Shown here: in pieces, positions 53,901 to 62,900 of the stretch
Layout of the letters: every line of letters starts with the position of its first letter
Numbering within the stretch: the stretch's first letter is position 1
From: Macrostomum lignano
Lineage: Eukaryota
Direction of reading: 5' to 3'
Assembly (NCBI GenBank): GCA_002269645.1
Contig: NIVC01000839.1
Span: 371,110-435,109, forward strand
Length of the DNA: 64,000 nucleotides
The notes under the pieces: model-generated
Databases searched by the model: none
Told to the model about the DNA's origin: nothing
What the model saw: the letters and a program-made list of their open reading frames with translations, nothing else
Program-made: the position numbers and the translations under genes

Positions 53901-56900
53901 CTAACTAACTAACTAACTAACTAACTAACTAACTAACTAACTAACTAACTAACTAACTAACTACTAACTAACTAACTGACTAACTAACTAACTAACTAAC
54001 TAACTAACTAACTAACTAACTAACTAACTAACTAACTAACTAACTAACTAACTAACTGACAATTAACTAACTAACTAACTGACTAACTAACTAACTAACT
54101 AACTAACTAACTAACTAACTAACTAACTAACTAACTGACAATTAACTAACTAACTAACTAACTAACTAACTAACTAACTAACTAACTAACTAACTAACTA
54201 ACTAACTAACTAACTAACTAACTAACTAACTAACCTGAGTGGTGCAGGGCAGACCGCAGACGAAAGCCAGCAGGCAGATGGCACAAAGTACAATCAATGG
54301 CCGACGCCCTGTGCCTAGTTGAGCGTACCAATTGTCGCACACGGATGTAACCAGCGTGTTCACATTGGCAATCATGGTGCCAAAGCCGAGGGTGAGCAGC
54401 ATGCCAAAGAATAGAGCGGCCCACAGAGGCGACACGGGCAGCGAAGTCACAATGTCCGGGTAGAGAATAAAGGCCAAACCGGCGCCTGAAATCATGACAA
54501 ATGTTCCTTTATCGATATATAGATACTTTCAAGACCGAATGAACATCTCACCATCCTTGGCTACTTCGTCGATGGGCACAGACATCACGTGACTCATGTA
54601 GCCAAGCACGCAGAAGACGGTCATACCGGCATAGATTGACGTGGCGCCGTCGCCAAAAGAAACAATGAGAGAGTCTCTATAATATGATTTGTTAAAATTT
54701 GTTTATATTCGAAACAGAAATTTGAATCGAACTTCAATTAGATAAAAGAAATTTGCTAATTATAGTTCTCACAGCAAGGCGTTGTTCCGAAATTTGTTAT
54801 AACTGCTCAGCGTGATGATTCCACCCCAACCGCTTGATAGGGAGAAAAATACCTGCGCAGATTGTTAATGAAAAGCATAATTTTAGGTCTATTATCCTGA
54901 TGTAGATTAGGACCTATAGGCGTCGCATTTTTACGTAGAAGTAACAATTAAGAAGTTCAGGTTCAAATCGGCTAGGTTCTTTCCGTTCAGAAGGATACCA
55001 CTGATACGTACTGGCACACGCTCACACAAGGTGTACAGCAAACCTGACTTCCTCATAGTCAGGCTCTGTGATTTTACGGGTTGACCCTCATGAGCATGAA
55101 TTGCAGGACAAGCCGATCGCTAACTAAAGATCCGTGCTCGAGCCCCAAAAGTACTGTAGCTGCAGTCTGCGGAAGGGAACTCCTGTCAGGTACTTTGGTG
55201 AGGGATTCAGTGACTCTCCGCGTCTTCAAGCTTCTCTGCTCAAGCCTCTACGACTCTTTAGCAATGCGTAGCCGAACAAATTTAGCCTGTCAACAAAATT
55301 CACCTGCATCGCCGCGTCGCCCCAAACGTTTGCGTCGGCCAGTCTCTGCCATTTTGGTATGAAAAAATAAGTCAAACCGTCGGAGCTGCCTTCCAGAGTG
55401 AGTCCACGAATTAGCAGAACCGTGAGCACTAGGTACGGGAATATACCCGTGAAGTACACGGCCTGCAGGTGATGAAAAATTGATGCAAAATTGGAGACTA
55501 TACGATATTAAATGTTCTATTAAAATATTAAACAGTCGTAAACTTTTAAAAACAAAATATTAAGTACCACGCAAAGAGAGACGAAAATTTATTCAAAGTT
55601 CCTCTGACCTGCTCAAGTCGGTGCATTCTTTTGAGGATTTGAGGATTTGATTTGAGTTTAAAATCTGTAAAACAGTAAGGATCCAGTAATAAAGGTTTTG
55701 TATTTATTACACTATAATATTCATAGTTCACCATCTTTCGAAGTCGCTACATTGATAATTATATAAGGCACGGATTATCAATAGGATAGATGCAAAAAAA
55801 CACGCCTGTGTAATAAATTTGATCGAGATAAAAAATCACAGATCAATTCATCATCCACAGAACATTTTTAGTGACATTGACTGTTGAAATAACAGGGTTG
55901 ACAGGAGAACATTGGAACTAGACACGATCCAATGTACATGATGTAATAGTATTGGCCAAGCAACCTAACTAAACAAAGTATTACGTCGTTATCCGTCGAT
56001 GTAATGCAAAAGCAAATATGTGTCATCGACGTCTACAGACACTGGGGAACTTCGGCCGACAATTGTCTAATATTGTCGAATGGCAAGACCAGTTGACACA
56101 GTTATTTCTGTTTTCAAACTCAATTCAAGTTGCAGCGTCTACGTAGCAGGCGGAACCTTAGGAGAGGTGATCCTCAATAGGATGTGCAAAGTCTTTGCAT
56201 CCCGTCTGCCGGGCCCCTTGCCAATGTCGAACTGGCACTGGTGAAACTGTGAGCTGCGGCAAAACTGAAAGTTCTTCTCTCGGAAATAGTTCACGATATC
56301 GCCGGAATCGTTCTCGCACAGGGCCACCAAGTCTACTGTCACTCCAGTGCCGGCTGGGAAGCTGGACTCCTGCGACACCAACTTGAAAGTCCAGTTGTCG
56401 CACGACTTCTGATAGCCCATTTTCCAGTCAGCATCCCGGATGGGGCTCGGGACTGGACCGGATTGGGTGCGGATCTCAACCTAGAGCAGAAGGAAGTAAA
56501 TTTAGCAACGCTTATAAAAATACTGGCAGTACAGTTGTTATTAAAACAAACCACTTTGTAGAGCCTTCATCTCAGAAACGTATGTTGCATGTTATGCCGT
56601 AGAGCCTCTGATCTTTAGAAAGGGAAAATCGATGTCTAGTCGTAGAGGCTTTGATCCCAGAAACGGAAAATCGATGTCTAATCGTAGAGGCTTTGATCTC
56701 AGAAACGGAAACTCGATGTCTAGTCGTAGAAGCTTTGATCCCAGAAACGGAAACTCGATGTCTAGTCGTAGAGGTTTTAATCCCAGAAACGGAAACTCGA
56801 TGTCTAGTCGTAGAGGTTTTAATCCCAGAAACGGAAACTCGATGTCTAGTCGAATAACTTTGACCCTTCGACTCCAGAAACGGAAACTAGACGTCTTGTC

Positions 56901-59900: not shown

Positions 59901-62900
59901 TTTGTGAGCGTGAAATTCTCGTTGCCGGAGCTGTGCAAATTGTCCGCCATTTTCGTTGCAATCTTCAGCTTCTTCCGAGCTCAGATCGTCCTCTTCTGAA
60001 CGTCGAACAATGAGTAATAAATCACTGAGCTCTGACGAGTTGCAGTACTGACAAATGTCCGAGACGAATCCTTCGGTGTCCGAGAGCTCCTCGCCGCTGT
60101 CGGTCCCAATGTCTGGTTTTGCCTGCAGCTTTAGCTGCTGCTGCTGCTGCTGCTGCTGCTGCTGCTGCTGCTGCTGATGCTGCTGCTGTCTTTGCTGCAT
60201 CACCGCCTTAGAGCTTCTATTAGAGTTGAATTCAATGCTAAGCGCATTCAATGGAGCTCTTCTGACAAATCCAGAGTGCTTTATTCGCCCCCTGTTTTTC
60301 CTGCAACTCTTGCTAGCAGCTGCAGGTAAATTAATTTTCTGCGCGCTCGTTTTACATTTTCAGGTTGGACGGCTTTTAGTCATGCGTGCAATCCGAAGCG
60401 CTTTTACGACTTTCTCTCATTCATTCTGGTACGAGCCGCGCACTACTACCGTTCTTTGCTTCTTTCGTCTCTATATTCCGTACTCTACTGTATTCTCTGC
60501 ATATAGCCTAAAGCTACCCAAAATGATGAAACCCATGCGTTGCTTGTATAATCTCGAGTTCAAGCCCCAGTTCTCACAATAGACACGCAGTGTTTGTTGG
60601 CACTCGGTTTACTTGCGTTTTGATTTCTATTCTGTACAAGAGAATTCTATATTCGGCTTGCGCGAACCGTGCTGGGCTTTGCGTGGGATTGCAATGCTGG
60701 GCCAATAAACTTGGCTAGAGCACAAGTACCTCACTTTTGACGTGGAAGGAATTTCGAATAGTTTTCGATATTTATCTGACTGAATTGTTTTAAGTAAATT
60801 ACAAAGGTACAAATTAAGTTATTCCATGGGTTTTTAAAATGCTTGTAAAGTTTAATTATTGATCAATGAATTTGATGAATTAAAAAATAATAATTGATTA
60901 CACCTGCCCCAAATGGGCAGATGTGCAACCAACAGCTCAGCCGCAGCTATTGCGCGGCGCATCTGAAGGCTGCGTACGGCTGTTCAGTCCAAGGACTGGG
61001 GGTAGCCACACACCCTCAATTACCCCAGCTAATGCTGGCACCCATTTTACAGCTGGGTGAACTGAAGCAATGCAGAGTTAAGTGTCTTGCTCAAGGACAC
61101 AAATTGTTCCAGTGGGATCGGGAATCGAACCCCCGACCTTCAAGTCGTGAGACCGACGCTCAAACCACTAAGCTGCAACCCCCTGGATTAATAATTAATG
61201 ATGAGTTAGTAATGAGGCAGTTACATGTAAATGAAATAATCATTTAGTATAATTTGATAATCATTCAGTAGAATCTGATAATCATTCAGTAGAATCTGAC
61301 AAACATTAAAAGTAATTTATCGTTAGAATAAAGCTGATTATAAAAAAGTATGTTTAGATATATATTCTCTAAAATCACCACCAGTTTCATTTAGATATCT
61401 GTTGAAACATGTGAAGACCTAATGAGCTTACCGTGAGTGAATCAGACTGTTCCATTCAGCGCTTGGATACTATAGTATGGTAGAATAATGTTTTTGCTAG
61501 TAGTTTATCACAAATAGTAGCAAAAAATGCTTAACGAATGCTTTACATACAGTTTATCGTTTTGTCAATGGTTAACAACTACTCATGTCTACTATTAGGT
61601 CAATCACTGGAACAGTAACGTTTGTTAAACTTCGGCCATGCCAACACAATCTATCAATCATTGTTGGCTACATGTAACTCTTATTTGCAGAGGGTCGCCA
61701 TCACAGATCCGAAATACATGTACATGTATCACAAACCGAAATATACAAACCCGAAATATCCCAAACCCGAAATATAACAAACCCGAAATATCACAAACCC
61801 GAAATTTCCCAAACCCGAAATTTCCCAAACCCGAAATTTCACAAACCCGAAATTTCCCAAACCCGAAATTTCCCAAACCCGAAACATCACAAACCCGAAA
61901 TTTCCCAAACCCGAAACATCACAAACCCGAAATATCACAAACCCGAACTATCCCAAACCCGAAATACAACAAACCCGAAATATAACAAACCTGAAAAATC
62001 ACAAACCCGAAAAATCACAAACCCGAAAAATCACAAACCCGAAACATCACAAACCCGAAAAATCACAAACCCGAAAAAGCACAAACCCGAAACATCACAA
62101 ACCCGAAATATCCCAAACCCGAAACATAACATACCCGAAATATCCCAAACCCGAAATATCACAAACCCCAAATATCCCAAACCCTAAATATCCCAAACCC
62201 GAAATATAACAAACCCCAAATATCATAAACCCCAAATATCCCAAACCTGAAATATAACAAACCCGAAATATCACCGAAATATCACCCAAAATATATATAT
62301 GTTTGTGATGCCACCCCTTAGCAGATTAATAAGCAATGCAATACTCACCTTACCAGCCGATTTAATGCCGCGAATCAGGCATATGACAACCACAATCCAC
62401 GCTAGCAGCAGACAGACCACCAACTCCCATTTCGGTAGCCCCATATTGTGGAAACCGTTCGATATGGACAGAACAAAATTGCTGAAATAAGAGTTTTAAT
62501 ATAGATGGAGTTCGTGCAGTTAATGAGAATCCTCAGGCCCTGTTAACGGTCTTATCAGCACTCAACTGACACATTTATCACTTTTCTGAACTTTAGAATT
62601 CATCATATGATTCATCATATCATCAAAATGCCGACTTGCTTGCCAAGCTTCATCGACAGAATTTCTGAAACAGCTGCTTCTTTAATCGACCTTGCACAAA
62701 GCACAATTTTTGCTTAATCAAGCAATTTGGAAGTTTCGATAGACGTTGAGAACTGTGGATGATTTTGTGCAAATAAAACTAAAAAACTAGTCCTAGATCT
62801 TCATGCATTGCGTTAATGCATTTTGCAGCAAAGACAACCGCCCCGATGTGTCATGGCACGAGAATCAGACGCGTGTACAGCTGAGCTGTTGCGGCATTTG

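Follow-up and report, generated by a model that had tools for sequence, protein, structure and literature searches.

The final part of a 64,000-nucleotide (nt) stretch of the genome of the flatworm Macrostomum lignano (contig NIVC01000839.1 of assembly GCA_002269645.1, positions 371,110 to 435,109; hereafter the window, numbered from its first letter) contains two protein-coding genes on the minus strand, one of which lies inside an intron of the other. The outer, host gene encodes a transporter of the SLC6 family that resembles the glycine and proline transporters (GlyT/ProT) and is the downstream member of a tandem SLC6 array. The inner, nested gene has four exons and encodes a protein with BTB and BACK domains. 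Its coding sequence (56139-60200) falls entirely within a single host intron (55463-62348) and is read in the same direction as the host.

Window position 64000 is also the end of contig NIVC01000839.1, and the 5′ part of the host gene, which comprises the exons for transmembrane segments 1 and 2 (TM1-2), lies beyond it. We assembled the host model within the window from GT-AG exons on the minus strand. Exon a (62913-63354), the first host exon in the window, is preceded by an AG acceptor, followed by a GTGAGT donor, and encodes TM3 and the large extracellular loop 2. Exon b (62349-62481) encodes TM4 and ends in phase 0 with ...GGC ATT AAA TCG GCT GGT AAG/GTGAGT at position 62349 (here and below a slash marks a splice site), where the residues are GIKSAGK. 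Exon c (55304-55462), which encodes TM5, begins at 55462, also in phase 0, as CACCTGCAG/GCC GTG TAC TTC ACG GGT ATA TTC CCG TAC. The remaining host exons follow on the same strand at 54773-54852, 54552-54676, 54235-54485, 51599-51979, 51395-51520, and 50993-51127, the last of which contains the stop codon. A first-pass annotation of the window had proposed that the GIKSAGK motif is split in phase 0 by an intron of 6.9 kb. This is borne out by a GT..AG intron of 6,886 nt (55463-62348) that encloses the whole nested coding region.

Each SLC6 exon of the host appears a single time, the exons stand in the expected order, and their phases fit together. Along its whole length, the spliced model matches at 100% identity a deposited partial protein of 613 residues (PAA76169.1, gene BOX15_Mlig013331g1), whose locus on NIVC01000839.1 agrees with window 40993-64000 at every base; this deposited model joins 62349 to 55462. 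A single continuous Pfam SNF match (PF00209; E = 3.4e-138; residues 137-513 against profile positions 150-522) crosses the junction. Among named relatives, the best matches (44-45% identity) are nemertean, annelid, and mollusc proteins called “glycine transporter 1-like” and “proline transporter-like”. Only RNA evidence went into the Mlig_3_7 annotation, which combined RNA-seq assembled with STAR, StringTie, and TACO with a de novo transcriptome and TransDecoder (PMC5730564). Because BOX15_Mlig013331g1 comes from this pipeline, we infer that spliced host reads span the 6.9-kb intron from 62349 to 55462.

The nested gene and its product

The coding region of the nested gene begins with an ATG at 60200-60198, has an in-frame stop upstream of this ATG, and terminates with a TAG at 56141-56139. 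Exon 1 (59693-60200) carries the ATG, encodes a polyglutamine (polyQ) tract as (CAG)n at 60134-60188 together with the first part of the BTB domain, and ends in phase 1 at the donor TTG/GTGAGT. Exon 2 (58672-59083; acceptor CACAG/G, donor GAG/GTGAAG, phase 2) completes the BTB domain and encodes BACK. Exon 3 (57868-58063; acceptor TTACAG/C, donor CAG/GTAATT, phase 0) encodes a linker with the conserved motifs AYRYRALC and RFG.Q, and exon 4 (56139-56480; acceptor CTCTAG/G, phase 0) encodes a β-rich C-terminal domain and the stop. The three introns measure 609, 608, and 1,387 nt; all donors are GT, all acceptors are AG, and the exons end in phases 1, 2, and 0. The resulting open reading frame (ORF) of 1,458 nt is intact and specifies 485 residues. 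The acceptor of exon 3 is ambiguous by 6 nt owing to a tandem site, TTACAG/CCTCAG/T, which can be used at 58063 or 58057; both choices are in frame and differ by two residues (LS).

Candidate processing signals flank the coding region on the same strand. Downstream, two AATAAA hexamers (55708-55703 and 55593-55588), candidate poly(A) signals on sequence grounds only, lie 431 and 546 nt beyond the nested stop and 240 and 125 nt ahead of the host acceptor. Upstream, two matches to the [T/C]TNCAG motif (PMC8629364) constitute candidate acceptors for spliced leader (SL) trans-splicing: CTGCAG (last base 60320) and TTGCAG (last base 60301), both within 60301-60325. These sit 119 and 100 nt before the nested ATG, with no other ATG in between.

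Pfam identifies a BTB/POZ domain (PF00651; E = 4.7e-16) and a BACK domain (PF07707; E = 1.8e-12) in the nested protein. We searched for homologs with the polyQ tract removed, since this tract swamped the full-length query. An exhaustive search of representative sequences together with a word-indexed search returned relatives with 35-42% identity over most of the length; for the BTBD17-like homologs, identity is 35-41% over 82-97% of the length. Homologs from Lingula, Mizuhopecten, Pecten, Physella, Haliotis, and Gigantopelta bear the NCBI name “BTB/POZ domain-containing protein 17-like”, and on the strength of these invertebrate names “BTBD17-like” seems a fair label for the nested protein. 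When the nested protein is aligned with 10 relatives, homology runs unbroken over all three exon junctions, and the nested protein retains the family residue at each of the 76 invariant columns (76/76). The continuity of this 11-protein alignment therefore validates the splice model and favors a functional gene. The first-pass annotation had described a complete four-exon BTB-BACK gene on the host strand, with BTBD17-like exons, splice sites, and a stop of its own inside the SLC6 intron; the exons, the GT/AG boundaries throughout, the TAG, and both Pfam domains agree with that description.

The Pfam BTBD17 TRAF domain (PF23651) scores below threshold in both the nested protein and its 10 closest relatives. 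A profile comparison with hhalign pairs the nested family with a Lottia protein that carries this domain (P0003) at a probability of 100%, and residues 344-407 of the nested protein align to its TRAF_BTBD17 region, reaching only the start of that domain. In a low-confidence AlphaFold model (pLDDT 60), the C-terminal eight-stranded β domain resembles the MATH domains of SPOP and USP7 (TM-score ~0.5, E ~1e-4), and the helical part of the same model matches the BTB-BACK region of KLHL11. Because it combines BTB, BACK, and a MATH/TRAF-like β domain, the nested protein is presumably a Cul3-type substrate adaptor. It shares with BTBD17 and BTBD17-like proteins the order BTB, BACK, linker (AYR[YF]R.LC, RFG.Q), and β-rich C-terminal domain, but differs from BTBD17-like proteins in its N-terminal polyQ tract and in a 26-residue acidic insert within the BTB domain. 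Gene structure differs as well: the main coding region of the BTBD17-like genes in Lottia and Owenia is one exon, whereas the nested gene of M. lignano has three introns.

A second contig and a fused protein model

A sibling contig, NIVC01002127.1 (locus L004), bears a tandem SLC6 paralog (P0279) followed by the missing TM1-2 exons of the host at 22028-22976. Both the upstream paralog and these 5′ host exons were found on this contig only. The TM1-2 exons are followed by SLC6 exons a and b, then by exactly 2,149 nt, and then by BTB exons 1 and 2. Positions 24316-29884 of L004 align to window positions 63771-58209 at 98.8%; the roughly 5.1 kb from exon a onward differ at only about 20 places (99.6% identity), most of them 1-nt homopolymer indels. 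The overlap of the two contigs reflects either haplotig redundancy or recent segmental duplication in a hidden-polyploid genome. On NIVC01002127.1, the same annotation pipeline calls a gene of 255 residues which, as reconstructed, uses the same ATG, the same exon 1 donor, and the same exon 2 acceptor as our model. Within the polyQ tract, the NIVC01002127.1 copy is shorter by one CAT (His) codon (window 60177-60179); this gap and a 1-nt deletion at window 59003 may be true variants or indel errors of long reads.

The downstream side of the arrangement recurs in a protein model of 2,591 residues (P0282; UPI0007A13499). This model contains, in order, SLC6 (1-193), BTB (12-480), and SLC6 (191-607) segments with amino-acid differences of its own, passing from BTB to SLC6 exon c. 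It shares a 90% cluster with M. lignano SLC6 proteins, its nested BTB copy is likewise open, and it takes the downstream acceptor of exon 3 (58057). Its UniParc number suggests an origin in the older protein set of M. lignano. An ab initio predictor has clearly over-fused P0282, merging three tandem SLC6 genes as well as the nested BTB gene. Such older fused models show how ab initio prediction joins the nested exons to the host. Another older protein model (P0005; A0A1I8GB13, 896 residues) likewise fuses tandem SLC6 genes.

These data bear on whether the nesting could be an artefact of assembly, or whether the two SLC6 halves could come from different paralogs rather than from one gene. The M. 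lignano genome is repeat-rich, hidden polyploid, and represented by redundant scaffolds, and the contig ends within the host gene, all of which invite such errors. Identity to paralogs is also uneven along the host, with exon a 98% identical to the tandem paralogs of L003 and L004 and the other host exons 70-87%. The step in identity, however, falls between exons a and b, away from the nested gene, and exons b and c, which flank the large intron, diverge alike from their nearest paralog (84% and 87% identical, respectively). DNA identity of 94% around exon a runs on into the flanking intron (L004 13296-14202), and exon a is probably a gene-conversion tract within the tandem SLC6 array. Against an artefact stand also the three independent representations that agree on the order, the single, ordered, and phase-compatible set of SLC6 exons, and the transcript-derived model that spans the intron. 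Because the sibling contig and P0282 repeat the same order independently, a misassembly of the nested arrangement is very unlikely. Together with the matching divergence of exons b and c and the transcript-derived model, they led us to reject both forms of artefact, whose combined probability we put close to negligible. The first-pass premise of one host gene, free of paralog mixing, stands on the same evidence.

Expression from the shared locus

We consider it on balance probable that the nested gene forms a separate unit, starting from a promoter and ending at a poly(A) site that belong to it alone, that the host removes the intron whole, and that the two genes are largely expressed apart. 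The promoter of the nested gene would lie within the 2.1 kb that precede its ATG, and the poly(A) site would fall near 55570-55690, 0.4-0.55 kb beyond the stop. During host transcription, the entire 6.9-kb intron would be excised as one unit. Host and nested genes would probably be transcribed for the most part in separate cells or at separate times, as is the case for OMP within CAPN5. Any host pre-mRNA that did use nested exons would yield a truncated product, with exon 4 supplying the terminal exon and the poly(A) site. Expression of the nested gene is supported by the pipeline call on NIVC01002127.1, which at 99.6% identity uses the splice between nested exons 1 and 2.

Several observations weigh against this interpretation. 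The nested gene has no annotation call on NIVC01000839.1. The call on the sibling contig ends early, at 255 residues, from a 1-nt deletion in BTB exon 2 (window 59003, a C lost in a CC run). Among 15 billion proteins, no similar Macrostomum protein was found besides the fused model P0282. The promoter, the poly(A) site, and the exclusive expression are themselves presumptive. Finally, ~30-39% of M. lignano genes undergo SL trans-splicing and the animal makes polycistronic precursors (PMC5730564, PMC8629364); a separate nested promoter is therefore dispensable.

This last point leads to an alternative in which no promoter is dedicated to the nested mRNA, which is cut in operon-like fashion from the host pre-mRNA through SL trans-splicing ~100-120 nt before the ATG followed by polyadenylation. 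The first-pass annotation had listed mutually exclusive expression, regulated intronic polyadenylation, and chimeric truncated transcripts as consequences of the nesting, all of them reasonable candidates; it missed SL trans-splicing, the option most specific to M. lignano. Multi-gene precursors make up ~7% of the transcriptional units of this species, and 15% of its genes have been placed in operons (PMC5730564, PMC8629364). This abundance of trans-spliced genes and multi-gene precursors, the two [T/C]TNCAG matches at 119 and 100 nt before the ATG, and the shared strand of host and nested gene are all in its favor. The 6-nt motif is short, however, and should occur by chance in any few hundred bases. 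The spacers of M. lignano operons cluster around 100 nt, with 1 kb as the threshold (PMC8629364), whereas 2.1 kb separate the host exon from the nested ATG, and the functions of the two genes are unrelated. We regard this alternative as a real but lesser possibility. A specific form of it, an “operon within an intron”, appears still more doubtful: here each precursor would give rise to either the transporter or the BTB mRNA, in a ratio set by 6.9-kb cis-splicing against trans-splicing and polyadenylation. Literature searches returned no hits on Mlig013331 and nothing relevant on nested genes together with a spliced leader.

The nested copy might instead be silent or decaying, a recently trapped sequence on its way to becoming a pseudogene, in which case the host splices over inert DNA. 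The RNA-based pipeline makes no call on NIVC01000839.1, the sibling copy carries a frameshift, and the protein is only 35-41% identical to its nearest relatives and carries an acidic insert and polyQ. Yet all 1,458 nt of the ORF, spread over four exons, read without interruption, the splice sites are canonical, and no family-invariant position has been lost. The frameshift amounts to a single base in a CC run, in an alignment whose other differences are mostly 1-nt homopolymer indels, and the transcript-only pipeline does call the gene on the sibling contig. The BTB copy within P0282 is open as well. We therefore judge a silent copy to be unlikely.

Decidedly less probable is the idea that the BTB exons serve mainly as alternative exons of the host, which would produce SLC6 TM1-4 joined to the last 113 residues of the BTB protein, or BTB-BACK joined to SLC6 TM5-12. 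The first-pass annotation had pointed out that a phase-0 join from host donor 62349 to the exon 4 acceptor at 56480 would be in frame. The arithmetic is correct: past this join, translation would run on for 113 residues until the BTB stop. Splicing to BTB exon 2 or 3 would end it after 4 or 37 residues. The reverse join, from BTB exon 3 (57868) to host exon c (55462), is in frame too, and all four of these sites are phase 0. Such agreement is unremarkable, since with three acceptors at least one will match by chance ~70% of the time, and we dismissed the phase match as a sign of function. The in-frame acceptor is also the weakest of the set, with TAG in place of the consensus CAG, and either product would split both folds, leaving half of a LeuT-fold transporter or a β domain without BTB-BACK. 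An ab initio predictor did fuse the two genes in P0282, but that model is plainly over-fused, and the transcript-derived models hold the genes apart.

Origin, neighboring features, and known nested genes

The host resembles, by its SNF match and its named relatives, the GlyT/ProT group of SLC6 transporters, and shares with Lottia a phase-0 intron at the same K/A codon boundary. In Lottia this intron is ~232 nt long; at the same position in M. lignano SLC6 paralogs, it measures 129 nt in L002 and ~1.2-1.8 kb in L003 and L004. These comparisons indicate that the intron position is ancient and that the intron has grown to 6.9 kb in the host. The host differs from the group in being cut at its 5′ end in the window and in its place in a tandem array that is specific to the lineage and has probably undergone gene conversion in exon a. 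Searches with tblastn and blastn detected no nested BTB sequence in three paralogous SLC6 loci (L002, L003, and gene 1 of L004), and the introns of these loci showed no similarity to the 6.9-kb host intron. In Lottia and Owenia, none of the neighbors of the BTBD17-like genes is an SLC6 gene; the neighbors are unrelated. Because the Lottia and Owenia genes have no SLC6 neighbors and the paralogous introns are free of BTB sequence, the nesting appears lineage-specific, and we infer that it arose within the flatworm lineage through a DNA-level insertion or rearrangement. We also considered a processed retrogene as the source; the three GT-AG introns of the nested gene rule out a retrocopy.

Repeats occupy much of the surrounding sequence. 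Between host donor and nested gene, the spacer contains a tandem array of a 16-nt unit in 34 copies (61727-62274). A minus-strand, tRNA-derived dispersed repeat that resembles a short interspersed nuclear element (SINE; 60883-61183) lies upstream of the nested gene and has an Rfam tRNA match at 61113-61182 (30.5 bits). ARAGORN reports no tRNA; Rfam alone picks up the tRNA-like SINE head. A second minus-strand copy of this repeat (57535-57749) shares nested intron 3 with a 42-nt tandem array of six copies (56598-56852), and further copies are found in L002. A different dispersed repeat inside BTB intron 2 (58123-58343) is 82% identical to L002 3085-3328. Another SLC6 intron is mostly occupied by a 2.2-kb (ACTA)n microsatellite of ~554 copies (52021-54234). 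Roughly 1.8 kb past the SLC6 3′ end, and convergent with the SLC6 gene, lies a plus-strand, ATG-initiated ORF of 312 residues with a hydrophobic N-terminus (48277-49215), which has neither a Pfam match nor a call in the deposited annotation. Elsewhere in the window are minus-strand exons of an MBOAT-family acyltransferase gene (32057-35213; Pfam PF03062, E = 1.8e-09 and 2.2e-08), whose introns contain tandem arrays. The window also includes a 10.4-kb satellite (496-10899; 291 copies of a 36-nt unit with 94% matches), and other large tandem arrays lie at 11.5-14.5, 16.0-18.3, 19.4-20.3, 30.4-31.1, and 32.6-36.9 kb.

The arrangement is real, and it belongs to the ordinary, well-known class of same-orientation host and nested genes, which has already been described. 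The first-pass annotation had contrasted it with a supposed rule that most nested genes are antisense to their hosts. This was overstated: more than a tenth of human and mouse genes form nested pairs, in which same and opposite orientations are “broadly similar” in frequency and only a slight bias toward opposite orientation is seen (PMC11694760). In the closest characterized parallel, OMP lies within intron 2 of CAPN5 on the same strand, and the two genes show reciprocal expression (PMC6549253). The OMP/CAPN5 pair and the mouse and human sets share with the M. lignano locus a protein-coding gene placed within one intron of an unrelated same-strand host, a host that has to splice across the nested gene and read through its poly(A) site, and a containing intron of unusual length. 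OMP, however, has a single exon, whereas the M. lignano gene has four exons with consensus-like sites, so that its host faces three extra acceptors and three extra donors. M. lignano differs further in possessing SL trans-splicing, and the pair described here is known from sequence and gene models.

Two other systems invite comparison. Expressed sequence tags and minigenes show that nested genes and intronic L1 elements in human cells can cause transcriptional interference, in the form of forced exonization, intron retention, and cryptic polyadenylation (PMC3192792). This mechanism predicts aberrant host RNAs like those anticipated by the first-pass annotation, truncated or exonized at the nested unit. 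The polycistronic units of M. lignano that are resolved by the spliced leader (PMC5730564, PMC8629364) offer a likeness in the organism itself, in the same-strand neighbors, and in the acceptor motif before the nested ATG. Those operons, however, consist of tandem genes with ~100-nt spacers, whereas here one gene sits in the intron of another at a distance of 2.1 kb from the upstream exon.

The novelty is a local one, namely a gene that is unannotated or misannotated, together with a multi-exon, same-strand nest in a flatworm that trans-splices. For the annotation of this regeneration model, a BTBD17-like gene is missing on NIVC01000839.1, cut short on the sibling contig, and fused into an artefact of 2,591 residues, and its SLC6 host is divided between two overlapping contigs. 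Beyond annotation, the locus could serve to study how cis-splicing, trans-splicing, and polyadenylation compete.

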